Shown: one piece after another, positions 7,821 to 29,141 of the stretch
Position numbering within the stretch: position 1 is the stretch's first letter
Layout: every line of letters starts with the position of its first letter
NCBI GenBank assembly: GCA_973895155.1
Contig: OZ316897.1
Coordinates: 4,558,211-4,622,210, forward strand
Reading direction: 5' to 3'
DNA from: Marsupella aquatica
Lineage: Eukaryota; Plantae; Marchantiophyta
Length of the DNA: 64,000 nucleotides
Translations under genes and position numbers: made by a program
The notes under the pieces: model-generated
What the model was told of the DNA's origin: nothing
What the model saw: the letters and a program-made list of their open reading frames with translations, nothing else
Databases searched by the model: none

Positions 7821-10729
7821 ATGGAATTGGGTCAGGCGCGAGTGGCTCGAATTGCTGCACACTTGCGGCCAGTGGTAAGTCGTTAAATCGATACATTTGT
7901 TTGGCACACAACTGCTGTTCTGAAATGTCAACTATGAATGCGAGTATGACCGTCAGCGTCGATTCATTTGGCCACTGTACATTGGATAGAAGTTGTAGTG
8001 GGTTTCAATGGCAGTCAGTTGAATGGAAGTAATTTTGTGACGTGGGTTTGCCTCTCTGATGAATGGCAGAGGCAAGATGAGTTTTCGTTGCGAAGGGAAT
8101 TGACGCGGGCGAAGGGAGCTGGACCTGGATTCAAGGTCGCAGTTCTAGGAGCTGCGGGAGGGATTGGGCAGTCTTTGTCGCTGCTCCTGAAGCTGAATCC
8201 GTTGGTGTCGACCCTCCATCTTTACGATGTTGTCAACACTCCAGGGGTTACGGCAGATATTAGCCATACTGACACCACCGCAGTGGTATGCTGAAGTGTA
8301 GAACTATGACATCAGTTACGAGCCCTTTGTTTTTTCCGTTCGTGAAATAATGGTTGGAGGAACTGACCCTCTGTTGCCGCTTGTGAAGGTTCGAGGATTT
8401 CTTGGCAACGCCCAGTTAGGTGCTGCATTGGAGGGGGTGGACCTTGTGCTCATCCCGGCAGGAGTGCCACGAAAGCCTGGAATGACTCGTGATGACCTTT
8501 TCAACATCAATGCTGGGATCGTGAAGACCCTTGTGGAGGGAGTGACCAAGAGCTGCCCGAAGGCCATCTTGGCAATCATCAGCAATCCTGTGAACTCCAC
8601 TGTCCCAATTGCAGCAGAAGTGCTCAAGAAAGCCGGTGTCTACGATCCCAAGCGGTTATTTGGTGTGACAACACTCGACGTCGTGCGAGCCAATACCTTT
8701 GTGGTGAGTTCACAGCATGTCTAGAAGCGCTTGTGCAGACAGCTTGGGGCCCTGAAGTCCAAACACTGATTGACATCACAACTCAGCACGATGCGTGTAT
8801 CTGCGCTTTATAATTTTTTCTCGCAAAATGGATCAGTCTCATTAAGGAACACAGTAGTAAGTCTGTGAGACATTGCGTAGCTTGTCTATATCTTCTTTGA
8901 CCAAACCATTTCTGTAGGGCTGTATTGTTTCTCTCCGGTCGTTAATACTTGACATTCTACTGTCAGTTACCATTGTCATTGAAACCTGTCTTCGTAACAA
9001 TCTTGCCAGGCTGAAACTCGGTTGCCTGTGTAGGCTGAAGTTATTGGGGTGGACCCAAAGACTGTTTCAGTGCCCGTGTATGGAGGACATGCTGGAGTCA
9101 CCATCCTGCCCATCCTATCCCAGGTATCCTTGAGCAGAGCGGTGGACTGTTTTTGGTAAATGACTCAGAATGGTTTGCTAGAAAAAACAGAGAGTTGGTT
9201 AACCGTCCTCTAAGGGATTGAAGCCCTGGATCTGGCCCAAATCACACGTACCACATTGCAACTCTCATGAATGGCGTTGGATAGGGACTCAGTGTACGAA
9301 TGTCTGAGGAGATCATGCACAGCAAGGCAATTGAGCGTATTGCAGAGTAGGCCAAGGGCTAGACATGGGGTTTTCGAAATTCTGGTTAGCTGGTCGGATG
9401 AATGTGCGTCTGAGCTACTCTTTTCCTATTTTAATCTCTGTTTTCGGTAGTGGGCACGCTCGCTGGCTTGGTTGTTCTGGATTCTGCTACTCGGTAGTCT
9501 GTCTTGGCTTTATGAAGCGGTGAGCTGCATCCTAAGACACAATTCTGCCATTTGCCTGTACAGCTCTGGTTTGACTCTTGTTTTGAATCATTGGATTGAT
9601 TTTTGTTTTCAGGTGTCTCCTCCGTTCACATTCTCCAAGGATGAAGTGGATTATTTGACAAACCGCATTCAAAACGGTGGCACGGAGGTCGTCGAGGTAG
9701 GGCAATGAGACTCTCAGTAAAACATGTAATGTTACTTGCCTTCCAACTTGGAAGATCTAGTGAACTGTTCTATTGACTTTGGTTGATCAGTGTGGATGAT
9801 AAGCGTTGTTTTAGTTTGCTCGGGAAACTTGTCCTTAGTCTTACGGAGGCGCTGTTGGACTTATTCTGTTGAAGGGTTTTTGATTCGTCTTTAGCTCTAT
9901 TTGTGCAACTTAGAAGAGAAGCTTGTACCTCTTCTCCCAGCGCAATTGTTCTGATTCCTTATTTTCTTCCGTTAAACTGCGACACAGGCAAAGGCCGGGG
10001 CAGGATCAGCAACTCTTTCCATGGTTAGTCCCTATCCGTTGTTGCATACGTTTTTCCTTGGATGACTATTGGGGTTTTTCTTTCAGGACATGTGTCCCGT
10101 GGTCTTAACTTAATCTTTACTGTTGCACTGGAACACAACCCTCAGGCCTATGCTGCTGCCAAATTTGCCGAAGCAGTTCTGAAGGGACTGAAAGGCGAAA
10201 CGGAGGTTGTTGAGTGTGCTTTCGTTGCGTCAACGGTATGATGCAGTATTTTTATTTGCTACTGCGCATTTGGTCTAATCAACTGGCATTGTTCCTAGAA
10301 AATCCAGAATACTGTCAGTCACAGCGAGATGTTTGCACATTTTACAACGTGGAGAATGCTTATCACAGGATGGCCTAACATGATTTGCTTTGCAGGTAAC
10401 TGAGCTTCCGTTTTTCGCTTCAAAAGTGAAGATTAGCAGAAATGGAGTGGACGAAGTGTATCCCTTGGGACCTTTGAATGAATATGAGAGGTGAGAGGGT
10501 TCACAAGTTAAGCTGAAAACTGTATAATTCTTGCACTTTGGATATAATCTTGCTGTCTTCTGTTTCACTTACTAATCTGCGTAATTGTCGCTGTGACTAA
10601 TGACAGTGCTGAATGACACTCTTGTTCTCGTGTTTTAGGCAAGGATTGGTGAAACTGAAGTCGGAGCTGAAGGAAAGTATCGAGAAAGGTGTCAACTTCG
10701 TACTAAACGGCCCCTCCAAATCCAAGTAG
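7821..10729 (+). CDS. PMDH: Peroxisomal/glyoxysomal NAD-malate dehydrogenase, 356 aa, with N-terminal PTS2
   Basis: Nine GT-AG exons with consistent phases: 7821-7874, 8070-8285, 8389-8703, 9034-9123, 9613-9696, 9988-10023, 10146-10235, 10396-10490, 10639-10729 (1071 nt). Motifs: PTS2-like [82 protein letters not shown]. Confidence 0.96.
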
Positions 10730-11630
10730 AGCAGTTTAGTACAGTCGAGAGTTTCCCCAGAACATGTTAACTAACGTAGGCACTAATGGTAGTGTTAGAA
10801 CTGTTGTATAGGTAATGGAGCAAAGTTTTAGTTCATGTCTGAAAGCGATCAAGCAAGGAAAGGAGCTGGTGTACATAAGGAATGAACCCCTCCAATTTGT
10901 CAGGCATGCCGAAAGGCTCCAATAATTTACTTTGGGTTTGTACAAATGTTTATTGTCCAATTAACGAGGGCCCAATACTTACGGGGCCACAAACATGAGG
11001 ACGCACTCAAGGCTACGACATTCACTCTGAACAGCATAGCCATGTCGATCTGTGTTTCCACGCTACGAATGTGATTATCAATCTTGGGCTTGCACTTTTA
11101 CCGGCACAAAGTTTTTTTATGCGTGATTTGGGTTGCCACGATCACGTTTGATATAGCCTTCTACTCTACTTGATGGACATTGAAATTGTTTTTTACACAC
11201 AGACCCTGCAGATCTTTTGTTCCAATTTCAAATAATGAGTGCAAATACATTTGTGTGAGTATAGTTCAATATTGTATGATGGGGGTCCCAAATTGGCCCA
11301 CCCAAACCATATTGGGCAAATTATTGTCCATTGTATTGTCAAAACTGTAAAGACTTGTGATTTTTGTATTGATATAGTCTCCTTTCTGTTGAGGAGGGGA
11401 TTATGTGAAAAATGTAAGAAAGGTAAAACCCAAATATAGTTTTATGATATAAAACAAAATAAAAAATTGTATCAAAGATCACAAAATTTGATTTTAACTT
11501 CTTTCATGTTTTTGGCCAATTGCATCGCAACCATTTCTAGCACGGCCCTTTAACTTCAATTTTCTATTTGATTCAGAGGTTCATTTTTATTTGTATGTTA
11601 TCAAAAAATTACTCAAATATTTAGGTATGT

Positions 11631-11740
11631 TAATGTCCTAGTTACAAGCATTATGGGAGTAGTGACCCTCAAAAATTGGGCTACGGCCCTCATTTTTGGG
11701 GGGCTACTACATCTCATAATGCACTCTAACCAGGACATTA
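11631..11740. mobile_element. 110-bp palindromic MITE-like element (family A)
   Basis: TAATGTCCTAGTTACAAGCATTATGGGAGTAGTGACCCTCAAAAAT pairs with ATTTTTGGGGGGCTACTACATCTCATAATGCACTCTAACCAGGACATTA. Begins and ends with TA, as in Stowaway/Tc1-mariner elements. Confidence 0.7.
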
Positions 11741-13429
11741 TCTTATTCATAAAACAATGTTCAGTGGTTCAGGATATTATGACTGCGTAGCTTTTGCCAC
11801 CCATCTGGTAAAAGTTGTAAAGTTTGATAGTTTTTGTGTGAGGGATGGACCCCTTATTGGAATTTCTGATGTGTAGCTTCTGATCTGCAGCATCGTACAA
11901 AATTTAGGGTTGTGACCCAAATCGCAAATGCAGGATCTTATCGTCAAGGAGAAAGGAAAGTTCCAAGTTTTGGCAATGGATCTCACTAGTGCCAAGAACC
12001 TCATCTCACGCATACACGAGAAGATAGTATCTCAGCCCAATAAGTAAAGGCTACAGGATTTAGCTCTCTCCCATGAAAGCTTGGGCTCATCTACAATTCT
12101 CTACTATAGATTTTTCTTCATTACCAAAAGTTGATGGTGGACATTGGACTTGCTTGTTCAACAAATACATGTATCTATGACTTTGGGTCAGAACAGGCGA
12201 AAAGCAGAAGCAATCAATACATTGACACACAAATTGCACAAGGATGGAGATCATCAAACACAAAATGACTAGAACTATTGTACCTTGTGTGTCTTGTATG
12301 TTCCTTATGTTCTGCTTATGCTCCCCAAGCAATGGTGTCCCCCTTCCAAGCAGGCAATTGATGCAGAGGACTGTGTCGTTGGGATAAAAGAGAAGACTGA
12401 TTCCAAGTGTGGAGGGACTTACCATACCTTGTGCCTAGACTGGTAGAGACCCACATTGACAAAACTTTTGTGAGCATGCACGTCTGCTTTTTTCATACAT
12501 CTGTGTTTGCCTAGTCTGTTTTCCATTTTGCTCTTTCCTGCGAGGTGTATCTAAGATGACAACTACTTTATTCAGGAAACATCATGAACTCCAAATTGAA
12601 TGTTAAATCATACCTTTTCATTTGTTACTAAAAGTGTATAGTGTTAATTATTTTTTAGCAAAGCAAGACAACTTCTACAGTTTAGGAGAATAACATGGTT
12701 GGAAAGACCCCCAAACTCACAACAAAGGTCCAACATTCATCTCTACAGTTTCCAAGCAAATCCACTAAGGTGTTGCCATACTAGCTTTTAAAAGGATTTC
12801 CTTTTAATCATGACCACACCCAGCTCCTGCCCACCTTGTGTTTGAAACTTTCTTCTTGGATACTCATTTTGGTCTCTTAAACTTGGATAGTATACTTTTG
12901 GGCTGCAACTTTTGCCTCTAGTCTGGATCACTCTCACAACCAGTGAGATGCTTATAAGAAGATAGCCAAGAGATGTCCAAACAAAATTTACAGTCAGACT
13001 TTGGTCCAGTTAACTTGCTTTGGTACCCAAAGTGGGCATGGCGTCAGGTTTAGAGACTTTGCCTCCCTGCTTATATAAAGTGCCTCTTCACGAGAGAAAA
13101 CTAGACTGAGTTTTTGTGGAGCCCATTTGAGGGAGACATCTCTACATGGCCAAGGGGGCAGAACTTTGGACCTCCTCTAGAGATGTTCTACTCTTTTGGC
13201 ACACAGTTCCCACCTTGTAAGCTTCAAGCTATGTCCCCACTCAATTCGAGATTGGGATAGGATAGGGATATATTCCCAAGCCTAAAGTGCCTCACATTTT
13301 TGTAAAGAGAAAGGTTGTTGCATGTTTGTAATGGACAGATCTTGGACAGATGAGACTTAATGGATCAAAAAAACCTTCCCAAACTGCTAGCTGCCTCCCC
13401 CACTATGTGGGATGCCCCTACCTTGTTTT

Positions 13430-14750: not shown

Positions 14751-16270
14751 CGTGCAATGCATGGGCATCCGGGAAGTGCAACATAATACACTCTGAAGAA
14801 TTGCAAATATTCATCCATAAGAGTCTAAGATCAGGTTTATGCATTCTCTTATAAGTTTGTCATCTAGTCCCTTATGCACTTAAAAATGTTAAAACAGTGA
14901 AAATGGTAGACAATGCAAAAGGTGCATAGGAAAGCCTCTCACAAGGACATTGTTCTGGTAGCCTGACGGCAGGTCAAGGTGTTTTCCAGGGGACTTTGGC
15001 CTCGTGGAAGGGCATTAGGCCCTGGGCCTCAACTCCTCATAAATCCTCAGAATCAATATGTGGGTACATTCAACCCTAGAGGGGTTTTATTATGTTAGCT
15101 TCAATTGTTTTTACCTTACTATATACAAAAATATTATATCACATAAACACCGTTCTATACATTGTAAAGATGAGTGAATGAATAAAGGTAGCCTTCATTT
15201 TTATAAAGAGCTGGCGCCAAAGTCATTCCCATTTGCAGACACGAAATCCAAGATCTTTCTGATTACTTAAAACATAATACACTACATGAGTTATTGACAA
15301 AAGTATATATTCCAATTTGGAAGGTACGTAGGAAATTGTTGTGTAAGGATTTCAATGTGAACATTGCCTCCAACTTCTCTCAAATAGGACATTTCTCAGA
15401 CAGAAGAAATGTCTAGACTCTCTAAAACTTTGGCTATCTCTATGCTTTTCTGATTTTGCAAAGAGTTTCCATTTCTATTGATCAGTATCATCACTTATAC
15501 CATGGGTGAGCACTTCCATCACCTGCCTTTGGTCTTCGGTTGCTCACTTTCACATAATTACATTATACTCACTGATTAGTAAATCACTAGACAGTTTATG
15601 ATAAAATAGCTAAATCTTAAAACTCACAATAGAGCTATCAAGTAGTTTTCAATGCAACAAGGGTCTTGTTTACAACGCAGCATTCCCATAGACAAATTTT
15701 GATGCTAGGCTAATTGTAAGCTACACATATTTAGTATGTGTTTTTGAACAAAGTTGCATGCTTTGTTAGTATTGATCCACTCAGGAAAAACTTTTCATTT
15801 CAAACACAGATTTTTAAGTACTTTGCCACTTAAAGGTATTCAAATTTACAACTCTGCCATTGTTTTTATTGTATTAACAAATATGTCACACTTTTTGTAT
15901 GTGGTTTCCTTGGTATTGTTGGTGACTGTTGTCCACATACAAATTTTTGGCATATTTATAAATTAATAAAAAATGCTGCAATATTGTTAATTAAAACATC
16001 TTTAGGGGCAAAATATTTAAGAGTTGTTTCTAAAAAAACTTCTGACTCTCAATTGTTTTGTTTAGTGGAACTCTAATGAGAAGAGATACACTAATCATGC
16101 TTGATTAAAGTCATTTATGGAGATGTTTTAAATATTGAATATCCCAATGTGTGTGCCTTGCACAACTTCACCAAGGGCTAGAGACATAGAAGACAAGGGA
16201 GGCCAAGGCACACATGGCGAGACCAGGCATATAGGGCAAGGGTGAGGTATGTGGAAATGTTTTTGTATAA

Positions 16271-16419
16271 GGTAATGACGATGTGGTCGTCCATTACCGG
16301 GGTGTAGCGGACCAACCAGGTTCTGACACAGCCACGACCGGCCGCAGCCGAGAGTGACTGTGGAGGAACTGGGGAGGACCAGTTCTCCCCGATAACGGAC
16401 GACACAGATCGTCATTACC
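16271..16419. repeat. Inverted pair of dyad sites enclosing two hairpins
   Basis: 16271-16302 GGTAATGACGA-TGTGG-TCGTCCATTACC-GGGG is inverted relative to 16387-16419 CCCC-GATAACGGACGA-CACAGA-TCGTCATTACC. Internal hairpins at 16327-16362 and 16366-16385. Confidence 0.85.
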
Positions 16420-16990
16420 GGACATAAATCCGGATTACTGATCCAGTTACTGGTTTGACCAATGAGAGCAGGGTATCAAAATTTCCAGGGGTAAAGCAAG
16501 GCAAGAGCGACAATTGCGGCACATTCAAACATTTTCAGTTTAGGTATCAAAATAGGAGAGACCTCTTGTCGATAGCGGTACTGGGATTGCAGAGGAATGA
16601 GGGTCAGTTGCACAGCAATGGAGGCTAGTTGCTGTGAGTGGGTCTGGCGGATGTTGAGATGTTGCGAGTTGCTCGAAGCGAGGAATGGCGGATGAAGATA
16701 TCTGCTCATTTTGGAATCTGTTTGTGCTCGCTTGCTGTTGTTTTGCCCGCTATTTTGCATTTTTGCAATGTCATTTTTGCAATGTCATTTTTGCATGTGA
16801 ATAAGTGCTGGTAGAATCTCCTGCTACTATGTGTTTAATGGCTGTGGCTGAGCATCAACTTGTCTCAATTTTGACCATTACTGAATCTGTGCAGTCGGTG
16901 TTGCAGGGATATGGGAGGATGGAGGAGTTGACCGAAGATGGAGCTGGAACGGAGTGGAGTGCTGGCGATATTGATTACCTATATGTCAAG

Positions 16991-17339
16991 TGTTGAGCAT
17001 AGACGACAATCGCAACGGCAAGCCCATGAACCATCCAACGCACAAGAGTTGACACAGAGAGAATGATACGTGGTTCACCTCCACATGAGGCTACGTCCAC
17101 GGGAACACACATGAACTTTACTGCACTCTAGGCCGACTGGCCATACCAAGCATCCACAACACAAGCTCTCTTCATCTCTCAACTAGCTTTGTAACAATGA
17201 GCTAGAGTTCCCCCTCTCCAAGCAAACACCGCTTGGTTATAGAGTGTGCACAGCATGACTAACCTAACCAAGTCTGCGACTAAGGTTAGCCTTAACTACG
17301 GTATATTCGTAACTCTAGACCTAAGAGTAAATCCTAATA
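16991..17339 (-). repeat. 3' LTR of the copia element (349 bp)
   Basis: Direct repeat of 23328-23672 with 19 substitutions and one 4-bp indel by hand count. Its inner terminal TG is mutated to TA. Confidence 0.97.
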
Positions 17340-17340
17340 A

Positions 17341-17350
17341 TCTCCCCCTT
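17341..17350 (-). other. Polypurine tract
   Basis: AAGGGGGAGA on the minus strand, 1 nt from the 3' LTR. Confidence 0.9.
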
Positions 17351-17532
17351 GACTCTGGTCTAGGGGAGGGTACAAAGACTGCTACCAATATGACTGCTCA
17401 GCGGGAAGTTCTGGAAAGAAAAACCAAACCGGTTTTTCCCTCTTTATACGAGAGTAGACCAGAACTAAGCTGTAGCCTATACAAGGAATGAGCAAGAGCA
17501 TATCTCAGTATCTACACAAATGTTAAGTAACC

Positions 17533-20500
17533 CTACTTGTGAGGCAATTGCAAAACCTGCAACGCATCACGGTGTCTAGAAAAACTCTCCAAAAGAATCA
17601 CTTTGGTAAAAGCGTCAGCCGGGTTGAGTTTACCGTCAATCTTGACTAGCTCAAACATATTATCAGACATAGCCTGCCTGATAAAATGGTACCTGACGTC
17701 GATGTGCTTCACTCTGCTGTCCATCACCTGGTTCATAGCAAGGTGGAGTGCACTCTGACTATCACAATGGAGCTTCACATTCCCCCGTGGCAATCCCATT
17801 TTAGTGATAAGTCTATCCAACCAAATCGCTTCCTTTGCTGCTTCCCCTGCTGCAATATACTCCGCTTCTGTAGTAGACTGAGCAATACACTTCTACAAAG
17901 TAGACCTCCAACTTATGCATCCATCTTCCAGTGTGAACACATAACCTGTTGTTGACCTCCTCCGATCCAAATCCTGTGCATAGTCAGCATCTACATAGCC
18001 CATCAATGATCTAGTATTATCAGCATGTGCATCAAACAATAGACCATGATCCACGGTACCCTTCAAATACCAAATAATCCACTTCACTGCTTCCCAGTGT
18101 ACCTTCCCTGGATTTGACATGTACCTGCTCACCTTGCCCATAGCCATGGCAAGATCAGGTCTAGTGCAAGTCATCAATACATGAGACTCCCCACTACCTT
18201 GTCATACGGAATCTTTGACATCAACCCCTTCTTTGTGTCATCTATAGGACAGAAAGCTGATGACAACTTGAAGTGTGGAGCCAACGGGGTACTTACTGGC
18301 TTGCTATCCCCCATGTTGAACCTTGCAATTACCTTCCTCGCATAACTGCTCTACGTCAATCATAGCTTGCCAGCCTCCAAGTCCCTAGTGATCTCCATAC
18401 CCACAATCCTCTTAGCTGGCCCTAAGTCCTTCATCTTAAACTCTGCACTAAGCAGTGCCTTGAGCTTAACAATCTCAGACCTATCCTTGGCCGCAATAAG
18501 CATGTCATCCACATAAAGTACTAGAACAATGAACCCAAAAACAACATTCTTCACCGGTTTAAGATACACACATGGGTCAAACACACTCCTGTGAAAGCCT
18601 TGTGCACGGATCCAATCATCAAACCGCTTATTCCACTATCTTGATGACTGCTTCAACCCGTACAAGGATCTCAGCAATCTGCAAACCAGATCCTCTTGCC
18701 CTTTCTTCACAAAACCTAGCGGCTGTCTCATGGAGATCACCTCTTCCAAGGTGCCATAGAGGAAAGTTGTGACAACATCCATCTGATCTAGCAGCAGACC
18801 AAGCATAACAACAAGCACACATAATAGCCGTATTGTTGAGTACTTAGCAACTGGTGAGAAGACCTCATTGTAATCCACACCTTTTTCCTGTGTGAATCCC
18901 TTGGCTACCAACCTAGCCTTGTAGACCTTCGATCCACATCCTGTGGACTGATCTTTCAGCTTGTATATCCACTTGCTGTCCCTCAGGCAGCTTGACAAGC
19001 TCCCAAGTTTTGTTGTCCTTCAGTGACTGCATTTCCGTTTGCATTGCTACAGCCCACTTCTGCTTCTCCTTTGAAGCACTTGCTTCTAAAGAAGGTTCCC
19101 CTTCTTCCAAAATCAATGTGTCACCCTCATCATCAGTAACAAAGTCCTCCTCTTGCAATTGAGATGAATCAACCCACTGTCCATACCTTGGTGGAGCGCG
19201 TACAGTGCGACTAGATGCTCTTCTAGCCGATGACTCTGGTTGATCTGCGTGTGCTGGTACAATTTGAAGCTCAGCAACATCCACTTGCTGCTCACCAGCA
19301 TCAACAGACTCCTCTGGTTCCTTTGGTATAGGAATCAACTCCATAATTGGAGCAACTCCTTCTCTCCGGTCATGCACCTTATGACCAATCTCCCCCTCAA
19401 TGAGATCCGGGATAGGAGATTTTTCTTTGTCAATATGGGAGACCTGAGTGTTCTCCCCCTCTTTCAATAATCTGGATTCATTGAAGGAAACATCTCTACT
19501 GACAACGAGCTTGCAGGCAATAGGATCCCATAGCCTATAGGCTTTCACATCACTCTGGTACCCAAGAAAAACACATTTCTTGGAGGTAGGATCCAACTTG
19601 GTCCTATTCTGCTTTGGTGTGAGAGCATATGCATCACTTCCAAAAACTACCAAGCCATGATAGTCTGCTTGTCGCTTATAGCGCATCTCAAATGACATTT
19701 TAAAATTGATAGCACTAGAAGGAGAAAGATTTACCAAATAAGTTGTGATATTGATAGCTTTTGCCCAAAATTCTTGTGGTAAACCTGATTGGCTCAACAT
19801 ACTCCGTGACCGCTCCAACAGTGTCCGATTGAGCCTCTCAGCGACACCATTCTGCTGCGGAGTATAAACTATGGTGAGATGGCGAGTCATCCCCTATTCT
19901 GAATAGTACTCTTCAAATTCCACTGAAGTTTACTCCCCGCCGTTATCTTACCTCAGACTCTTCACCCTTGTATCCAAACACTTGACCGTGTTCCCAGTCT
20001 GATTCTCCACCTGGGCCTTCCACTTCTTAAAAATGGACAAGACATCAGACTTATGCATCATGAAATAAATCCACACAAATCTTGAGTAATCATCAATAAA
20101 AAATACATAGTACAACTTTCTAGAGTGTAAGGGAGTTGGGGATGGATCCCATACGTCACTATGTATGTACTCAAGAACCGCTTTGGAATGATGAGTTCCA
20201 ACATCGAAAGCACGACGATGCTGCTTTCCAAGAATGCAATGCTCACAAAACTCTAATTTACAAGATTGCCAAACCCTTCTCACTCATGTGGCCTAGCCGT
20301 GAATGCCACAATCGAGTCATCTCCTCGTGAGACTTGGTTACATTGGCCTCTCCACATACAATATTGCCCTGTAACACATACAAATTCTTTTGTCTGCTCC
20401 CTTTCAAAATCACTGTCTCTCTCGACCTGACTTGAAGTTCACCATCAATAACGCTCCATTGATGACCATTTGAATCCAACACACCGAGTGAAATTAGATT

Positions 20501-21791
20501 CTTATGCATGCCAGCTACATACCTGACTCCGAACACTGTGCGCATAGCGCTATCAAACATTTGAATCTTCACAGACCCAATTCCTTCAATTTGACAGGAG
20601 TGATCATTTCCCATCAGAATTGAACTGTTTTGAAATAGAGTAAGAACTGAAAAACTCACGAATGTAACAAATATGAAAAGAGCAAGCACAATCAAGAATC
20701 CATACATCATCTGCTCTCCTAGATGACGTGCACAGGGCATATCCTTGGCTTCATAATACATACTCATCATTGAGTAAATCAACATCTCCATCAGCCCTAG
20801 CCACATTTGCCGATGAAGATTCAGCTGCCTTTTCCTTACAGTCTCGCTTGAAGTGTCCAACCTGGTTGCACTTCCAACATGTCACCTGCCTCCTCTGAGG
20901 GGATTTGCTCCTGGACTTAGATATGGATTTAGATCTAAACTGGGTTCTACGGTCCCCAGTTGGTCGCTGCATACTCCTCCCACGGTTAACATTGAGGGCA
21001 ACACCAGATGAAGAAGGCTGTGACGTGATGTGCATCTTTTGCTAAAGATCATCACTAAGCAAAGAACTTACAACGTCATTGTATGAAATGGTATCCCTAT
21101 CACGATGCAACAACACCCGTGATAGGGACTGGTAAGATGGAGACAATGAACTGAGAAGCTGCAGAGCCTTCATCTCATCATTCAAACTCTCCCCAAGGTT
21201 TTCCAAGTCAACGACCATGTCGTTGAAAGCATCCACATGGTCCTACAATTTTGTACCGGATTCCTTCATCCTGAAACTCATCAGTTTGTAGGAAGTATAG
21301 AGCTAGTTTGACAACTCCTTGCGGTGATACTTGCTCTGCAATTACGCAAACAAGGATATGCAATCCTTATGTGCACCCAACTGCTTGATGATGGGAGGCA
21401 TGAGATAGAGTGTAACACACCACACTCCCTGCTCCTGGATGCGGTCCCATTGTTTCTCATCAACATCGTCTTCACGAGGGCTCAGCAGTTGGCCCATCCC
21501 CGACGCATAGAGCACTCCCTTCATCTGCTTCTCCCACAGCAAGTAGTCAGAGCGCCCATCATACTTTGTCACTTCATACTTGGGGCCCCCAAGCTTGAAC
21601 ATCCCCATCTTCTTCTTTTGCACTACCGTGAGCTCCGGTAGTAGAACAACTTCCTCCACCACACGCCGCATCGGTGATGGTACCGGTATCACGTGCTTTT
21701 CCTCCTGCTCCTCTCTCTCCACCTCAAACCGTCGCAGTGATCCTCGTGCTTCAAGTTCCACGTCTTTGAAAATCTCCTCCGAATCACTCAT
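17533..21791 (-). pseudogene. copia gag-pol polyprotein, fragmented by frameshifts and stops
   Basis: KYEVTKYDGRSDYLLW (gag), CWKCNQVGHFKRDC (Zn knuckle), WILDCACSFHIC (protease, altered site), LWHSRLGHMSEKGL, CEHCILGK, FIDDYSR and TPQQNGVAERLNRTL (integrase), YKARLVAKGF and LYVDDML (RT), YVDADYA and HIDVRYHFIR (RNase H). Confidence 0.95.
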
Positions 21792-23313
21792 AAGAGAAAA
21801 TCACGAAAAAATGTCGTTTTTCACAACTTCTCAAAAAACTCAAAACTAAACACTGCCGCGTAGCCCACAAAGCTAGGAGTCCAACATTGAAAACCAAAAT
21901 TGAAATTGAAGTTCGATGGAAAAGTTATTCAAATTTTGGTTGAGGTGGATAAAACCTTGGGAAACTTCCCCGTTTTTACCACCTCAGGGAATAACCAAAA
22001 TGCCAAGTACAACCCATCTTCAAAATCGCAATTTGATTGGTGCGTCGCGTTGCTAACTTCAATGGCTACAACCTCACCGAAAAAGAACCAAAAAAATTAC
22101 CATTCGGTGCACGGAATCTTTGTTGGACGGCCAAAAAACAGCTCTCTGTTTTTTGGGAATATTCCCACACAGTTTGAAGGTCTCACAGGGGGCCGTTCCC
22201 CCTGTCTAAGCGGTTAAAACGGAGGGTCATAGGGCCCGGGATGCGGCACAACCAATGAGGAGGAGGACAGAAAAAAATTCCAAAAATGCACTTTAGAGGG
22301 GCCTTAAAGCCCCTGGAAAACGCGCACGTATTCGCGGCCATGCTCGCGTATTTGCGACCAGAATCGCGTATAATGTGCAAAAAAAACGTGAAAAAATGGG
22401 TTTAAAGGGGTCAAAATGCGCGTATTTTTGCGTATTTGGGCCATACAAGGGCGTTTTGGGCTGTATTTTCACCAGAAAGAGCACATTTTGGTGCTGAAAG
22501 GGGTATGGGAGGCCGGGGCGCACGCCGAGGCATATGGCGAAGTAGGTTTGTTGGGATTTGAAGGTATACAAGCCGTATGGAGGCATAAAAATGCCCTAAA
22601 CTAACCTTAAAATGTGTCAAAAATGACACAAAGGCCGTGTTACAAACCTCAGCTGCCTCCGCTTTGGTTTCCAAAGAAAAGTGATGACCGCCGACATGAA
22701 AATGTTGCCAAATTGCACCGGCACATCTGCAGCTCCACCAGAGAAGAGAAAACCTCCGCCGTGTCTTACTCTCTCCGTGTCAAGGGCCAATCCTAGACTC
22801 AAAACGATCGCCTCACCAGGATCTCTCCGTTGAGCCTCAGCACTTCGCGTTTCTTCCTCCGAGTCAAGCGTCACAACGAGTAATCCGGTTCAGGGAAAAA
22901 CAAGCATCATAGCTTGTTAAAAAACCAGAACTCAACTTTCACTCGTCACGACGCACTCACTCTACAAACGCCAGCAAACCAGGTACCAAAACGACCAGCT
23001 CTATTCAACCTTCAACTTGAGCTATAACATGCGATGTCTCCCGCACCGCACAGCTCACACCGTTGAAAACACGAGCTCTGGTCTCTCCCCCGAAAAACCA
23101 TCGAACACAAATAAATCCAGAACGACGCAAACTCCAGGTCCTCCGCACCACAGATACCAACCAGTGAGTTCTATACACCGATAGAAAGCCCTCTCACTAA
23201 TCTATCCGCTCAGTCACACACATTCAAGTTTCATGTGATGAAACTCCAAATGCAACACCGACACTGAACGTTGGAAAACTGTCACAAAAAAAACCTCGTC
23301 ACCTCCCAGGCAT

Positions 23314-23325
23314 GCTCTGATACCA
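23314..23325 (-). promoter_or_regulatory. Primer-binding site complementary to the 3' end of tRNA-iMet
   Basis: TGGTATCAGAGC on the minus strand, 2 nt downstream of the 5' LTR. Confidence 0.95.
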
Positions 23326-23327
23326 AT

Positions 23328-23672
23328 TGTTGAGCATAGACGACAATTGCAACGGCAAGCCCATGAACCATCCAACGCACAAGAGTTGACACAGAGAGAT
23401 ACGTGATTCACCTCCATATGAGGCTACGTCCACGGGAACACACATGAGCTTTATTGCACTCTAGGCCGACCGGCCATACCAAGCATCCACAGCACAAACT
23501 CTCTCTATCTCTCAACTAGCTCCGTAACAATGAGCCTGAGTTCCCCCTCTCCAAGCAAACACCGCTTGGTTATAGAGTGTGCACAACATGACTAACCTAA
23601 CCAAGTCTGTGACTAAGGTTAGCCTTAACTACGGTACATTCGTAACTCTAGACCTAATAGTAAATCCTAACA
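23328..23672 (-). repeat. 5' LTR of the copia element (345 bp)
   Basis: TG...CA termini, adjacent to the PBS and the TSD. Confidence 0.97.
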
Positions 23673-25658
23673 TCAAGGAGCTACAGAATGAGCAACCGTC
23701 TGAGCTTGAAGATATCAATTTACGCAGTGTTTTGGACAAAACTGCTAGAGAAGCTATGTCTGTTGAAGTTCTCTCTACTCTTTCCTGTGCAAGGCCTGTT
23801 AAGCAGTTGCAAGTAAGTATGCTAGGGTTACGGGCGCTTTCTGACCCTGCACTAGTTGAGGCAAGTAGAGGGGAGGAGAAGTTGGCCTCGCATAGCAACG
23901 ATCGATGGGCATTAAGATGTGTTGACAACCTAAGATTGGGTCTAGGCTGGGACATGACGATTCCTCTCGAGAATCTCCCTTTTCAGCAGCTTGACGAGCT
24001 GCTTAGCAATCTGTTTATGAGAGTTGTGAAGGTGGACGGTACTCCATATCCTTCAGCCACTCTTATGAATATGATGAATGGTTTTAACCAAATCTTGAGG
24101 CATGCAAGCGACATTCGATCACTGAGAGGTGAGGTAAACTTCTTGGAGAAAGATTTTAACATTATCGCTCATCCAGCTTTTGCTAGAACTTGCATGGTAC
24201 TCAATGTTGCCATCAAGAAGAGTGCCAAGGATGGAGTAAACAAAAAGAGGAAGAAGGTATGTATCTTGTTCTTATTTTCTGTCAAAGTTGATGTGCATTT
24301 GCTGTTTGTTCACATTTGACTGTGTTTTGAAACTTGCAGGTTGAAGTCTTGATAGAGGAGTGGAGAAGGCTATCTTAGCAGACATTGATCATCAGATGAC
24401 CTACAGCCATGGATGTCAGAAGCGATTGGCATTCTTTTGTCTTGTCAGGCTGGGTCTTCGAGGAGGAGGGAAGATGTACAACTTGCACCGTAATGACTTG
24501 ACCACTTGCCTAGACAAAGCAAGAAGAGAATATGTGATGTAAATACGTCATATTTGTTCGATTCAATAAATATATCAAGTTTCTTGCTGTATTGCTTGAC
24601 TGACCAAGTTTTATGTGGTCTCTATGGGGCAGGTTTGAAGAGAGGCAGAGCAATTAAGAACAATTCGTACACACTCCAGAGATACCAGGAGGAGCAATTT
24701 AAATGTTTTTCACAGTTATGACCAGGACTTTCTCATGATAGTGAAGCAATACAAGCGGCATTTGCCTTCTCAAGAAGAAACAGACAAACCTGATTTGTTT
24801 ATGCAGGCCATCACAAAACCAGCCGGGATTAACTGGTACAACAAGTCTCACAAGATGGGGGAGAGAAACTGTTGGTAAGTGGTTGAAAAACATGGCTTTG
24901 TTAATTGGATTGCCACCTGAATTGTTCACCAATCATAGCGGGAGAGCTACTCTTATCACCCAAATGAGTGCTTGAGGAGTTCCTGATGTTGTAGGTATGC
25001 TAATCAGCGGACACCATTCAACTGGGGGCTACTTGAGGTATGATCGTACTCAGAGACTTAAAATGGAAGCTGCCACTTTAGTGTCTGCTCATCCTGAACT
25101 GAGCTATGAGAAAGCCTTAACACATGTTTCTAAACAATTTGTCCAAGAGGAGCTGGTTGGCTTGTGCTCTGGTTTGAAGCCTCTTGTCAGCAGGGTGGGC
25201 GAGAATATGCAATTGACCATCACCAATCACTTGCCGGTAGGTAAACAGATCTCCTTCCTATAATTTGTAATCAGTTGCTCCTCATTTGGTTTACAGTGTA
25301 TGTTTTTTACTTCATTTCTGGTTTGAAATGACAGGTATGGGATGAAGGACGTGGGAAGGAGAACAATGGTATGCTGTTGGAGTCCACTGAAGCTTTGACC
25401 AATGTGTCCGACTGTTCAAACAACAAGAGATGAAGATGGGAGTCTACTGACAATTTTGATTGGGAGAATGAGATTATGACCAAGAATCCAGAGCTGTTTC
25501 AGAAAATGTCAAAGTTGCCGAAGTCTCGTTTGACTATAGGAACTAATCTGATAGGGAATTCGTTCCATAATTGTAGTGTGACAATAAAGGTTGTTCAGCC
25601 CAATACCGAGGATGACAAAGAGAATAGTTAGCTCCAGAGTAATTCTTTTTGAGATATT

Positions 25659-27239
25659 TTTATCTGGAACATTTTTTGGTCCTTTTCAAGTAAAACCCAC
25701 GAAACCCACGGGAAGGAGGCCAAAGCAGCCAAAACAACATCCAAAATGCCAAGCAACCACGGTCGAGGCCCCATGGGACAGAGCCGGCAAGGAGCACAAA
25801 GCACATGAGTGCTTGTAGGAGTGACAAAGCCTAAGGTAGAACTGTCTAACATCTAAAGGCCTTGTAAGTCACCAGACCACAAACCGATCCATAGTGGATG
25901 GCCACTACAGCCCTAAGAGTTGCTATCAAGAAAGTGGACAGGCAAAATAGAAAAACGTCAGTTGAATGAACTAGTCTAGAGAGCCAGAGCTCACTTCTAA
26001 GCCTAAAAGAGCCACTGCCTTCCCCTAGTAAGAGCCTAGTGAGAAAAAAGTGCTTCACCATGTCGCGAAGGCATCCTTCCTTCCGAGCCACCTCCTTCTC
26101 TCACTGAGCAATGCTTCCTTGGCCTGGAGGAGCCTCGCATGCTTGCAACAGGGGCCATAAGTTTCACACAACCCATGAATGTTGTCCGCCATTTCAGAGA
26201 GGACTAGATTAAAATTGAAGGAGCGTCTTATTAGGGGATTGAAAAATTGTTCATTTCTGGCATTCCACAAAGTCCACAAGACCTGATATACCATGAAGGC
26301 CACGATTGTGTGCGTAAAGCGGGGGCCTTTGAAAGAACCAAGCAGTTGCATAATATCCGCAAGAGGCTAGAGAATGATACCAGGAAAAGACTGAGATGCC
26401 AAACTCCAGCATTTACGTGCAAATTGACATTTAAAGAAGAGGTGAGGGATGGATTCTAGTTCCGTAGAGCAGATTTGGCACATACCATTGCTCTTCCCGA
26501 TTCTAAGAGCCCGCGTGCCTGTGAAAAGTCCTTGTGCAAGTATCCTCCATACAAAGGTGCGGGATTTCAGAGGTAAGTCCGAAGTCCATAGTGACAGCCA
26601 TATGTTATTCCATTCCGGCTCCGTGAGAGCAGTATGCCAAATCCCGTTTAGCCGTCTGTAGTCTGTTCCTTTGGGTGTGAGCAACTGGTACATGCGTGCA
26701 TTAGGTAGTGTAAAGCGCCTCAATGATTCGGGTTTGTCCGACCACCGCCTTTGCCCTGCAAAAGTGTGCCCAGACCGCATTTGATCTGTAAAATAGGTGA
26801 TTTTGCTTAAGAAGCCCAAGCTCAATTCTTTAGTCCTATCATCCAAGCCTTGCACTCTGGCTAATTTGCTGGAATAAAAAGCGAAGTTGCTTGGAGAAGG
26901 CTCTTTAAGATCTGCTACATCCCGGATCCCGATCCTGCCACAAGTCCTGTTGATGGCACAAATTGTGTCTTCCCCAAGATCTTGCAGGCCCTCCATGCAT
27001 CGGATCACATCCTCCACCCACCATTGTTTTGCCACTGCAGTGTCCCTAGGAGAAAAAATGAGATGTGTACGTAACGTCTCCCAGGAGTGCCAAAGACTTC
27101 CAGTGTAGCTCATTCCACTGAAAGCCCGAGGGGTAGCAGAGTAAGAGTCGATCCGTAAAGGAATAATTGTTCCGCCTGATTGTTTTGGCATTACGCCATT
27201 TAGCTAGACATAGGTTTGCTGCAAACAACCGGGCCCAGT
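25659..27239 (-). mobile_element. 5'-truncated L1-like LINE (ORF2 C-terminus with zf-RVT, plus 3' UTR), ~1.58 kb
   Basis: PLKSRTFVWRILAQGLFTG, CQICSTELESIPHLFFKC and LWTLWNARNEQFF. Identical 17-bp flanks ATTCTTTTTGAGATATT at 25642-25658 and 27240-27256 (TSD). Short A-rich 3' end. Confidence 0.92.
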
Positions 27240-28598
27240 ATTCTTTTTGAGATATTGATGCTCTACTAAGACATGATTGTCCAGTAACAATGTACTAGCT
27301 CTCGGGTTGATCAGTTTTTGGATCCCTTTTGAATAAATGGAAATATTTCACAGATCTGTGTCTTTTGTATCGAAACTGTGTATCCATGTTGCATTAAGCG
27401 TGTTCCAACAAATAGTTATTACAAGAAATTGCCCTCCCAAGTTTTGTCAAGAACACTCAGAAATTTGCTCTGATGAAAGAACCATTTCAATCCAGCCATT
27501 CATATATTTTTGTCACTGAAAAGATACTTGTGACATCCAGTCAGTGCGAAACATCCACACAAAAAGACTTTCTTGAGTTTTCCATCCAACCATTACGGGA
27601 ATCCAGAGGCGCATTATGTATTTCCATCCAACCATTATGAGATTCGGTAAGCACATTATGTTTTTCCGTTGTGTCAGGAGGTGAGATTATGGTAATTGGG
27701 ACCATGGACGGAAAACTTCACCCAACGGTAACCTGATCACTAACCTGGATTTATGGCCAAATAAAGAGATCCCAGGTTCAATCCTCCCTCCACACACAAG
27801 GGGTGTAAAGGGATGTGTGTGTGTGAGTATGTCTTATCCCCTTAGCCTCTGGATGACCTTTTTGGGGTTCTGGTTTAGTCTTCTCTTCCTCCTGTTCTAG
27901 GTCCCTGTCCCCATCTTTGGGTATTGTTCACTTGTGGCTACCCTAGCATGTTCCATAACAAGATATCTATCTTTGGATGGGCCTACTTTAGTTTTTAAAG
28001 GCAAAAAGAAGAAGATGTTCATTACAAAAATTAAAAATTCAGCCAACTACCAAGAATTCTCCCGGTCCAGTCCAGATGACAATTTGCCATGAGCTTCGTG
28101 GAAATTATAAGATGCTGGATTTTTACTAGGTTACACAGAAATCTTCGTGACTTTAGGGTAGGTGAAAATGGTCCCCTTATCTTTTGGGCGGGGAATCTTG
28201 ATTCTGCAGTACGCGGCGTCGGGATGGGTTCGGCCCCAAAGTCCCAAACCCTAAAAATCATTTTAACCTCTTCTGGTGCTGCTGAGTTTTTCCGCCGCTG
28301 TGTTGCGTGCCCTAAACTCATGACTTGCCTCATCAGCTGCTGGCGACACGCGCTTCTTGTGGGGCGAGCCACAGGTCGTTCATGATCTGCTGCTGACTGC
28401 ACTCCAGCGGTTGCTGAGGCTTCATATCTGGATCGGGAGCGATTGTCGACGCAGTGCGAAGGTTTTCTTGTTCGGGTTCGTCGCTGCGTCGGAGATTACT
28501 TGGTGCTGTTGGTGATTGCGGAGGGAGAGCTCGTCGGAGGTGCGTTTGTGACGAAGGACGAGCAAGGTTTTCGATCAGTCGACGTTTTTTTCGTCAAG

Positions 28599-29141
28599 AT
28601 GGCGGAGTACAGATGCTTTGTTGGTGGCTTGGCGTGGGCCACGACCGATACCAACCTGGAGCATGCGTTCCGGCCATACGGAGAGGTGGTGGAGTCGAAA
28701 ATCATCAGCGACCGAGAGACGGGACGGTCACGAGGGTTTGGCTTCGTCACATTCGCCGAAGAACAGTCGATGAAGGACGCCATCGAGGGAATGAACGGGA
28801 AGGAGCTTGACGGGCGGAACATCACCGTCAACCAGGCCCAGTCTCGAGGTGGAGGCGGAGGTGGTGGTGGCGGAGGCGGATTCCGCAGCGGAGGTAGCGG
28901 TTACGGAGGTGGAGGTGGTGGATACAAAGAGGGTGGTGGAAGCCGTTATGGTAGCGGCGGTGGTGGCAGCGGCTATGGTGACAGAGCCGGAGGAAGAGGA
29001 GGCAGTGGTGGTGGATATGGTGGTGGCTACGGAGGTGGTGGTGGTGGGTACGGTGGAAGCAGAGGAGGTGGTGGTGGAGCCTATGGTGATAACAGCTGGA
29101 GGCAAGACAGCCGTGGGAGCGGTGGTTTTGGGGAAACCTAA
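28599..29141 (+). CDS. Glycine-rich RNA-binding protein (RRM + Gly-rich tail, GRP7/8-like), 180 aa, intronless
   Basis: ATG in CAAGATGG context, RNP2 CFVGGL, RNP1 RGFGFVTF, and GGY repeats. A telo-box AAACCCTAA lies upstream at 28246-28254. Confidence 0.95.
   Translation: MAEYRCFVGGLAWATTDTNLEHAFRPYGEVVESKIISDRETGRSRGFGFVTFAEEQSMKDAIEGMNGKELDGRNITVNQAQSRGGGGGGGGGGGFRSGGSGYGGGGGGYKEGGGSRYGSGGGGSGYGDRAGGRGGSGGGYGGGYGGGGGGYGGSRGGGGGAYGDNSWRQDSRGSGGFGET

Follow-up and report, generated by a model that had tools for sequence, protein, structure and literature searches.

Probable remains of a CryptonA-like tyrosine-recombinase transposon, with inverted-repeat ends and a hairpin, in the liverwort Marsupella aquatica

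For the Crypton DNA transposons, Goodwin 2003 is reportedly the work cited together with Kojima & Jurka 2011. According to reviews and two specialist papers, Cryptons and DUF3504 proteins are found in fungi, animals, stramenopiles and some algae, and the published Cryptons have no terminal inverted repeats (TIRs), only terminal direct repeats of 4-6 bp (PMC3212892, PMC13465315). In the CryptonA/DUF3504 Cryptons of animals and Glomeromycota (Glomhoppers; Kojima & Jurka 2011, PMC3212892; PMC13465315), the recombinase is the only protein and there is no reverse transcriptase (RT); an N-terminal QRICH1-type domain is followed by a DUF3504-type catalytic domain, introns are possible and domesticated host genes arise. 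The locus described here and its plant relatives are like CryptonA in these respects. Unlike CryptonA, the plant family has land-plant hosts, TIRs of about 33 nt (three copies) and a conserved hairpin of about 160 nt (four copies), and it scores below the Pfam DUF3504 cut-off. The inverted-repeat ends and the hairpin depart from the Crypton descriptions in the literature searched, in which short direct repeats and no TIRs are the rule that the plant family breaks. Since published Cryptons lack TIRs, the element is classed as a Crypton variant.

In the window, that is the whole stretch of 64,000 nucleotides analysed, we found what is probably a dead copy, of about 3.2 kb, of a DNA transposon whose sole gene contains introns and codes for a tyrosine recombinase of the DUF3504/QRICH1 (CryptonA-like) type. 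The unit spans 16265-27756 and measures 3207 bp once two later, nested insertions are removed: a copia element, which interrupts exon 1, and a LINE fragment, which lies 27 nt past the stop codon. It consists of a hairpin module of about 160 nt, a left TIR of about 33 nt, the four-exon recombinase gene, a 3' region and the right TIR. The coordinates given in an earlier note on this DNA held for the coding part and fell short of the whole unit. The features are as follows.

16265..16424, + strand: hairpin end module (long imperfect palindrome), about 160 nt; starts with GTAT and ends at the hairpin/TIR junction
16422..16455, + strand: left TIR (TIR-L), directly after the hairpin; inverted match to 27724-27756 at about 26 of 33 bases
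16456..16918, + strand: 5' non-coding region, between TIR-L and the first Met of the ORF
16919..16990, + strand: exon 1, first part (MEELTEDG..DIDYLYVK)
16991..23672, - strand: decayed copia LTR retrotransposon; LTRs 16991-17339 and 23328-23672; target-site duplication (TSD) TCAAG at 16986-16990 and 23673-23677
23678..24256, + strand: exon 1, second part, N-terminal QRICH1-type core-binding domain
24257..24339, + strand: intron 1, GT..AG; position of intron 271/272 of P0023
24340..24538, + strand: exon 2, with the catalytic Arg (GLRGG); frame broken near 24360
24539..24632, + strand: intron 2, GT..AG, phase 2; at column 550 of alignment A1, as the introns of P0023 and the Marchantia genes
24633..25236, + strand: exon 3, with Lys (ERQS/KNNS), NHSGR and GHHS..YLRYDR; frame broken near 24652, 24700 and 24857; in-frame TGA at 24973-24975
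25237..25334, + strand: intron 3, GT..AG; corresponds to intron 485/486 of P0023
25335..25631, + strand: exon 4, C-terminal tail (..FHNCSVTIKVV..); in-frame TGA at 25431-25433; stop TAG at 25629-25631
25659..27239, - strand: 5'-truncated LINE fragment; perfect 17-bp TSD at 25642-25658 and 27240-27256
27257..27723, + strand: 3' non-coding region, with a 42-nt tandem duplication at 27579-27662
27724..27756, + strand: right TIR (TIR-R), where similarity to the ends of other copies stops

The interruptions of the unit are explained by the TSDs of the copia element and of the LINE; the 17-bp sequence flanking the latter is found exactly twice in the window against 0 expected. The copia LTRs are 94.5% identical (K2P 0.058), end in TG..CA and have the 5-bp TCAAG on both sides. 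Bases 16988-16990 (AAG, K) form a full codon of ORF 16805-16996 and 23678 opens a codon of ORF 23579-24319, so that removal of the copia element and one TSD copy yields ..DIDYLYVK|ELQNEQ.. in frame. LTRs, TSD and codon positions thus agree with the rejoining of exon 1 that had been proposed from the letters alone. The join is also backed by homology, since the relatives have LY[VIL][DK]EL precisely at this point.

Of the remaining gene structure, the three GT-AG introns all coincide with introns of P0023, an annotated gene of Calypogeia fissa, and the position of intron 2 is common to the Marchantia gene as well. The gene was searched exon by exon. Over all exons, the window pieces are 57-62% identical to P0023 (tblastn E 1e-37 to 2e-38). 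The gene is dead, with at least four frameshifts (near 24360, 24652, 24700 and 24857) and two in-frame TGA codons (24973, 25431). A paralogue of about 92% identity, recovered from public sequencing runs of the same organisms, has one extra base after 24360 and differs exactly at the exon 3 lesions (-4, +2, -1, T>C). The present copy can no longer carry out recombination.

The catalytic set that had been claimed for this gene (GLRGG, ERQS/KNNS, NHSGR and GHHSTGGYLRYDR) was found in the translated pieces. Although the ORF that carries them is frameshifted, the window motifs GLRGG, ERQS/KNNS, NHSGR and GHHSTGGYLRY align with the family motifs IRGG, SKN, N[KH]SGR and GHKS..Y.RY, and the catalytic R, K, H-x-x-R, H/W and Tyr occur in canonical order and spacing, the Tyr lying 9 residues after H/W. 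The C-terminal tail was likewise recognised in the relatives, as NC-x-[VI]-x-[VIF] common to those from liverworts and ferns.

Identification of the recombinase came from relatives and profile comparison. The second part of exon 1 has 85 relatives among 1.84 billion representatives (best E 1e-49). Exon 1 matched the QRICH1-domain repeats of protein P0043 (BLASTP E 2e-8; phmmer E 7.6e-9 library-wide), which contains three PF12012 and three PF25561 domains above threshold (163 bits for PF12012, 109 bits for PF25561). The family profile A1 aligned with P0043 over both domains (hhalign 98.3%, E 1.3e-14, 265 columns), and the nearest ESM Atlas clusters were DUF3504, Phage_integrase and QRICH1. By these comparisons, the family is of the DUF3504/QRICH1 type. 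The Pfam models DUF3504 and Phage_integrase, through which the earlier note had hoped to see the gene identified, stayed below threshold on the relatives and gave nothing on the window: no Pfam match was obtained for the seven stop-free pieces at E up to 1, the best relative reached 24 bits (E 4.4e-5) for DUF3504 against a cut-off of 29.7, and 3 of 13 family members matched at all. Giant proteins with MucBP/Cna_B domains that phmmer returned (P0027, P0062 and similar) are bacterial adhesins and were taken as repeat-summed false positives.

At the level of fold, the AlphaFold model of the intact relative P0063 matched Cre (Foldseek probability 1.0, E 5e-5; VIA Z 11.8 over 276 residues). Roughly the top 20 Foldseek matches were all Cre, and the top 23 of VIA were all recombinases or topoisomerase IB; after Cre came XerA, IntI, XerD, Tn1549 Int, QRICH1 (Z 8.8; chain 9hjt_H) and topoisomerase IB. 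The model is weak overall (mean pLDDT 55) and of poor quality near HxxR and His; it shows two domains, a helical core-binding one and, after it, the catalytic one, the window copy itself being too broken to fold. In this predicted fold, the family is a tyrosine recombinase. The family profile found nothing among the PDB sequences at E up to 10. The family is like Cre/loxP and XerC/D, its best structural matches, in the order of catalytic residues and in having inverted arms around a short core. It is unlike them in that identity is 13-16%, the plant gene is eukaryotic and intron-bearing, and the arms are far longer than the 13-bp lox arms.

The hairpin module folds as DNA at -45.5 kcal/mol (z -5.9) and is homologous to modules upstream of the C. 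fissa recombinase gene at loci L004 (E 2.5e-15) and L001 (E 2.6e-12). In an alignment of four sequences, 32 of 60 predicted pairs show compensatory changes and 87.8% of the cells are paired, against 35-44% in slid controls; none of 500 shuffles reached this value. The hairpin was not detectable at the intact C. fissa copy P0092 (L002), and the 5' non-coding region (16456-16918) showed no detected similarity to other copies.

The TIRs of the window, L001 and L004 have a common design: they start with (A)CGTAA(T), and TTACCGG lies about 33 nt further inward. In L001 the two TIRs match at 91% over 35 nt (E 1.4e-8), and in L004 at 91% over 33 nt. The pair of the window is about 79% identical and, taken alone, not above shuffled controls; what makes it count is where it lies and that it follows the design of L001 and L004. 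A direct search for TIRs between 15900-16930 and 25600-26700 gave nothing above shuffles; the right end lies beyond the nested LINE. At the hairpin/TIR junction, the core is TTACGTAA in C. fissa and ACATAA in the window copy, a CG-to-CA difference. The same hairpin and TIR design is found in the window copy and in three C. fissa copies (L001, L003 and L004), while the remaining flanking DNA is unrelated. L004 is a deletion derivative, about 1.4 kb long, which has lost internal sequence but still has both TIRs. No tRNA was found in a scan near the right end. Mobility is something that we infer, since neither an empty site nor a polymorphic insertion or an excision product was observed.

The named relatives come from liverworts, a moss, a lycophyte and ferns. 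Homologue searches with P0063 or alignment A1 returned 8-10 close plant relatives, the word index of the search not reaching as far as animal or fungal DUF3504 proteins, and the metagenome contigs searched with alignment A2 held no related loci. At least five gene models are spread over several contigs of C. fissa, and Adiantum has three copies, at least 90% identical, on three chromosomes. For the subfamily of the window copy, only about two copies at 85% identity or more were found in the public runs. In Marchantia polymorpha and M. paleacea, one syntenic copy is collinear over more than 13 kb, with a dN/dS of 0.22 overall and about 0.05 over residues 4-374, indicating purifying selection. 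Its catalytic positions are altered (His to Ala, HxxR to RPGR), and no common hairpin was found at the Marchantia loci. This homologue (Mp5g04240) looks domesticated. Like the animal ZMYM2-4, QRICH1 and KCTD1, it is a homologous two-domain protein, syntenic, under purifying selection and changed in its catalytic residues; the window copy, unlike these, is a pseudogene that retains the catalytic set and the termini.

A host gene was to be known by a single, syntenic copy under purifying selection, and this picture applies to the Marchantia homologue and not to the window locus. The Marchantia gene is also what first speaks for a rival explanation, according to which the locus is the pseudogene of an immobile, Crypton-derived domesticated host gene (compare ZMYM/QRICH1), duplicated ordinarily and later struck by the copia and the LINE. 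An intron position common to the Marchantia gene and the window copy, the low copy number of the subfamily and the location among host genes (MDH at 8350-8721 and an RRM gene at 28443-29138, neither of them syntenic with the relatives' loci examined) would fit this history. We nevertheless hold it to be very unlikely: against it stand the ends common to the window and three C. fissa copies amid unrelated flanks, the retention of both TIRs by the deleted derivative, the Marchantia loci without this hairpin and the near-identical Adiantum copies on three chromosomes. Of the two origins put forward in the earlier note, the lost domesticated gene is therefore a misfit here and suits Marchantia, and the decayed member of a plant Crypton-like family agrees with the fold, the profile comparison, the conserved termini and the lack of a linked RT.

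The TIRs themselves open another possibility, namely that a DDE transposase mobilises the transposon in trans and that the recombinase gene is cargo or a partner. There is a precedent in MarCry-1_FO, a Crypton fusion that has TIRs and a TA TSD and is moved by a Mariner transposase (PMC3212892), and TA adjoins both ends of L004. The flanks of L001 and of the window differ from this, however, and no copy contains a DDE gene. Moreover, TIRs and hairpin diverge along with the recombinase subfamilies, and the ends are centred on a short palindrome, as recombinase core sites are. Such trans-mobilisation is thus very unlikely.

Finally, a DIRS/Ngaro-type retroelement remnant that lost its RT and RNase H is highly improbable. 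In its favour, DIRS elements likewise have a tyrosine recombinase and inverted terminal repeats, and there is a weak resemblance of the N-terminal domain to ALOG (Z 5.6). Yet neither the element nor the surroundings of the copies in C. fissa, Adiantum and Marchantia contained an RT or RNase H, whose constant linkage the earlier note would have taken as grounds to abandon a Crypton, or a methyltransferase. The sole RT-related piece is the separate opposite-strand LINE with its own TSD, different copies have retained introns at matching positions, and the nearest profiles are DUF3504/QRICH1.

For intact members of the proposed transposon family, the following mechanism may be envisaged. A two-domain, Cre-like recombinase, in which a core-binding domain at the N-terminus precedes the catalytic domain (R, K, H/K-x-x-R, H and a Tyr nine residues after the His), would bind the inverted arms flanking the short palindromic core and cleave through a 3'-phosphotyrosyl intermediate. 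Excision would turn the element into a circle in which the two ends, now joined, make up a long palindrome, and the circle would be re-integrated by site-specific recombination at a short matching target. It can be argued that the intermediate would be DNA and not RNA, because introns are retained at conserved positions.

We put at about even chances the broader reading that these copies represent an undescribed superfamily of tyrosine-recombinase transposons of non-seed land plants, with a long palindrome (TIRs plus hairpin, around a core like that of C. fissa) as its site, mobile in Calypogeia, Adiantum and Marsupella aquatica and domesticated in Marchantia. If this is true, the intact members would be a plant-native, Cre/lox-like pair of recombinase and site that can be tested. 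The occurrence of the family in liverworts, a moss, a lycophyte and ferns would extend the Crypton class to land plants, and with the hairpin and inverted-repeat ends that class would for the first time have a recombination site of clearly defined architecture. The conserved Marchantia gene would parallel the domestication of animal ZMYM/QRICH1, in a model species that is easy to knock out.

The present copy is a decayed example, and it is of value as an independent case whose two nested insertions can be dated. The gag, integrase and RT ORFs of the copia element lie fragmented on the minus strand, and a piece of the integrase matches Pfam SH3_retrovirus. The LINE fragment gave a Pfam zf-RVT match (E 1.5e-14) at 26367-27188(-).

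In the earlier note, a recombinase gene was described as split by a copia insertion, as rejoined exactly in frame when the copia element and one TCAAG are removed, and as continuing through three GT-AG introns; all three points were confirmed.

Features of the recombinase gene and its copia insertion (window coordinates)
16986-16990 and 23673-23677: copia target-site duplication (TSD), TCAAG (5 bp)
16991-17339 and 23328-23672: copia LTRs with TG..CA ends, from LTR comparison
24257-24339, 24539-24632 and 25237-25334: introns 1-3 of the recombinase gene, all GT..AG

The two copia LTRs are 94.5% identical (K2P 0.058; 17 transitions and 2 transversions), and this divergence of 5.8% marks the insertion as old. 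The copia gag, integrase and RT ORFs, read from the minus strand, are fragmented. By codon counting, a codon of ORF 16805-16996 is complete at position 16990 and one of ORF 23579-24319 begins at 23678, so that deletion of the copia element and one TSD copy joins ..DIDYLYVK to ELQNEQ.. in frame. In relatives, the motif LY[VIL][DK]EL is situated exactly at this point (e.g. FLYLDEL and ILYIDEL), which indicates that the join is more than a coincidence of frame.

The window recombinase gene is dead. Its frame is broken near 24360, 24652, 24700 and 24857, and in-frame TGA codons occur at 24973 and 25431. In sequencing runs, the same organisms were found to carry a paralogue of about 92% identity which differs exactly at the frame breaks: relative to the window, its contigs carry an additional base after 24360 and two after 24700, lack four at 24652 and one at 24857, and read C for T at 24973. 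The window gene was searched piecewise by reference.

When the exon 1b piece (window 23678-24256, 193 residues) was compared with 1.84 billion representatives, only 85 matches were obtained. Relatives occur in liverworts, a moss, a lycophyte and ferns, the named sources being the liverworts Calypogeia fissa, Marchantia polymorpha and M. paleacea, the moss Ceratodon purpureus, the lycophyte Diphasiastrum complanatum and the ferns Adiantum capillus-veneris and A. nelumboides. The closest full-length relative, P0023 from C. fissa, showed 57-62% identity with every exon aligned. By alignment with the family (hhalign 100%, E 2.7e-44), the lycophyte protein is clearly a member. Giant proteins from the ENA metagenome (P0027, P0041, P0044, P0053 and P0062) also matched exon 1b, with E down to 5e-13, in 5-9 repeated stretches; they were taken as false positives from summed repeats. 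Of these, the two scanned with Pfam, P0027 and P0062, carry MucBP and Cna_B domains and are adhesins of bacteria.

In an alignment of 13 family sequences, the N-terminal domain is conserved (W..R...WR and L..LL..FF..V.K.DG..YP) and the catalytic motifs read IRGG, ERLSKNYK, SN[KH]SGR and GHKS..Y.RYD. The final Tyr is placed nine residues past the His, a spacing that Cre, lambda Int and XerD share. The tyrosine recombinase catalytic set previously claimed for the window copy is present as GLRGG, ERQS/KNNS, NHSGR and GHHSTGGYLRYDR.

The proposed assignment to DUF3504 or Phage_integrase was not borne out by Pfam itself: seven stop-free pieces of the window gene gave zero matches, and the relatives gave only sub-threshold ones (DUF3504, 24 bits against a cut-off of 29.7; Phage_integrase, 18 bits). 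It was upheld by the fold and by a profile match. The AlphaFold model of an intact relative, P0063, has a mean pLDDT of 55 and is good over residues 190-430. Its top match was Cre (Foldseek probability 1.0; VIA Z 11.8 over 276 residues), followed by XerA, IntI, XerD, Tn1549 integrase, human QRICH1 (Z 8.8) and topoisomerase IB. Furthermore, the family profile matched P0043 over 265 columns spanning both domains (98.3% probability, E 1.3e-14), and exon 1b aligned directly with all three QRICH1-domain repeats of this protein. In Pfam, P0043 itself clears the threshold by a wide margin for both DUF3504 and QRICH1, each of which it carries three times. As a lead only, the nearest ESM Atlas clusters were DUF3504/Phage_integrase/QRICH1 proteins of molluscs and cnidarians. 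The conclusion was that the protein belongs to the tyrosine recombinases, in the DUF3504/QRICH1 (CryptonA-like) lineage, and has diverged below the Pfam cut-offs.

The ends of the element were recognized from a hairpin and a pair of terminal inverted repeats (TIRs), both of which recur in two C. fissa loci, L001 and L004.

Ends of the element in the window and in C. fissa
Window 16265-16424: strong DNA hairpin (z -5.9), about 500-650 nt before the start codon
Window 16422-16455 and 27724-27756: TIR pair, about 79% identical
L001 9633-9667 and 13823-13857: TIR pair, 91% identical over 35 nt (E 1.4e-8)
L004 9380-9411 and 10762-10794: TIR pair, 91% identical over 33 nt
L004 9219-10794: internally deleted unit in which the hairpin and the two TIRs are preserved

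Homologues of the window hairpin were detected in L004 (E 2.5e-15) and L001 (E 2.6e-12), where they precede the recombinase gene at a corresponding position; apart from the hairpin, all sequence outside the coding exons is unrelated between the window and these loci. An equivalent hairpin is also present in L003, a C. fissa locus of the other subfamily. In the alignment of the four hairpins, 32 of the 60 predicted pairs show compensatory double changes, and the share of paired cells is 87.8%, falling to 35-44% with the partners slid; none of 500 shuffles reached the observed values.

In the window, L001 and L004 alike, an inverted repeat directly follows the hairpin and its partner is located downstream of the gene. 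All six TIR arms fit one design, starting with (A)CGTAA(T) and carrying TTACCGG about 33 nt inward, and arms within one element are more similar than arms of different elements. Outside the elements, the copies have unrelated right-hand flanks. Taken alone, the window pair does not exceed shuffled controls; what gives it weight is where it lies and that it follows the shared design. At the junction of hairpin and TIR, the core is palindromic in L004 (TTACGTAA); L001 has TACGTA there, and the window has ACATAA, a CG-to-CA difference. The 3' subterminal region of the window element contains a tandem duplication of 42 nt with 79% identity (27579-27662), each unit of which includes CCATTA[CT]G and might offer extra recombinase-binding sites.

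The extent of 16919-25631 given in the earlier note was too small: the unit runs over 16265-27756, and the interpretation attached to it was supported.

Insertion and host genes at the right and left of the gene (window coordinates)
8350-8721, plus strand: MDH exon of the host, malate/lactate dehydrogenase NAD-binding domain
25659-27239, minus strand: nested 5'-truncated LINE fragment (zf-RVT, E 1.5e-14)
28443-29138, plus strand: RRM protein gene of the host

The right end is found 2.1 kb past the stop codon because the LINE fragment is nested there, beginning 27 nt past that codon and flanked by a perfect 17-bp TSD whose sequence occurs only twice in the window. With the two insertions subtracted, together with a single copy of each TSD, the element measures 3207 bp. 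Inside this unit no other gene and no RT was found, which answers the earlier reservation about a retroelement, and exons of host genes (MDH and RRM) are situated on either side.

That the gene might be a host gene, syntenic and under purifying selection, had been raised as an alternative, and the Marchantia homologue does behave in this way. The M. polymorpha (L005 10001-16984, Mp5g04240) and M. paleacea (L006 10001-17419) loci form a syntenic orthologous pair, collinear over >13 kb, with a dN/dS of 0.22 overall and of about 0.05 across the N-terminal two thirds (residues 4-374). Constraint is missing from the C-terminal part (dN/dS >1 for residues 442-536). Ala replaces the second catalytic His, HxxR reads RPGR, and no hairpin common to the two species was detected. 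The Marchantia homologue is thus likely to be a domesticated host gene, a parallel to ZMYM and QRICH1 of animals.

For the window element, the evidence points to a transposon. Its termini are conserved between unrelated flanks. The L004 unit of about 1.4 kb, short and with a truncated ORF (255 residues), represents an internally deleted derivative that still has both TIRs; a separate perfect 19-nt inverted repeat (L004 9190-9208 and 13711-13729) surrounds it. In C. fissa, several gene models lie on different contigs, and in Adiantum three copies of at least 90% identity lie on three chromosomes. Introns occupy the same positions in different copies, which supports a DNA over an RNA intermediate. 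Against a simple picture, the sequencing runs contain only about two subfamily copies at ≥85% identity, the copia LTR depth being near 10^6 in the same runs, no empty site was seen, and a hairpin was not detectable at the intact C. fissa gene P0092. With conserved ends, unrelated flanks, a recombinase fold and no RT, the proposed plant Crypton-like family is supported; the window copy is a decayed example of it, and the family is the interesting part.

Kojima and Jurka (2011, PMC3212892) listed no land plant among Crypton hosts and described Cryptons as without TIRs or long direct repeats, having only 4-6 bp terminal direct repeats. In the 2026 Glomhopper paper (PMC13465315), DUF3504 proteins are widespread in Opisthokonta and Cryptons are not tied to TIRs; a 2025 review placed Cryptons in fungi, protists and animals. 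Full-text searches covering Marchantia, bryophytes, ferns and plants brought up no description of Crypton/DUF3504-type elements of land plants. As the Marchantia protein is named "DUF3504 domain-containing protein" in UniRef, proteins of the land-plant family are already in public databases, but they were found undiscussed. Since the plant element has TIRs, unlike Cryptons as defined, it is not filed as a plain Crypton; it is classed as a structurally new variant among DNA transposons that encode only a recombinase.

Other copies were also observed. The C. fissa copy P0092 (L002 10001-12532) is an apparently intact 642-residue gene with all catalytic motifs, and no hairpin module was detectable across its 22.5-kb locus; either this copy is immobilised or its ends have diverged too far. 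In the window, a second hairpin module, shorter and decayed, was located at 11617-11753 on the minus strand by the covariance model (34.6 bits, E 2e-6), from whose training set it was absent. A TIR-like ACCTAAAT..GATAAC stretch follows this module, near which no recombinase-coding sequence survives; the module may be an end piece on its own or what is left of another element. The 790-aa gene model P0034 fuses PPR repeats with a fern-type recombinase copy, probably through run-on annotation or insertion beside a PPR gene. At the A. capillus-veneris P0046 locus, a Replitron_HUH-domain gene is found about 4.7 kb downstream of the recombinase copy.
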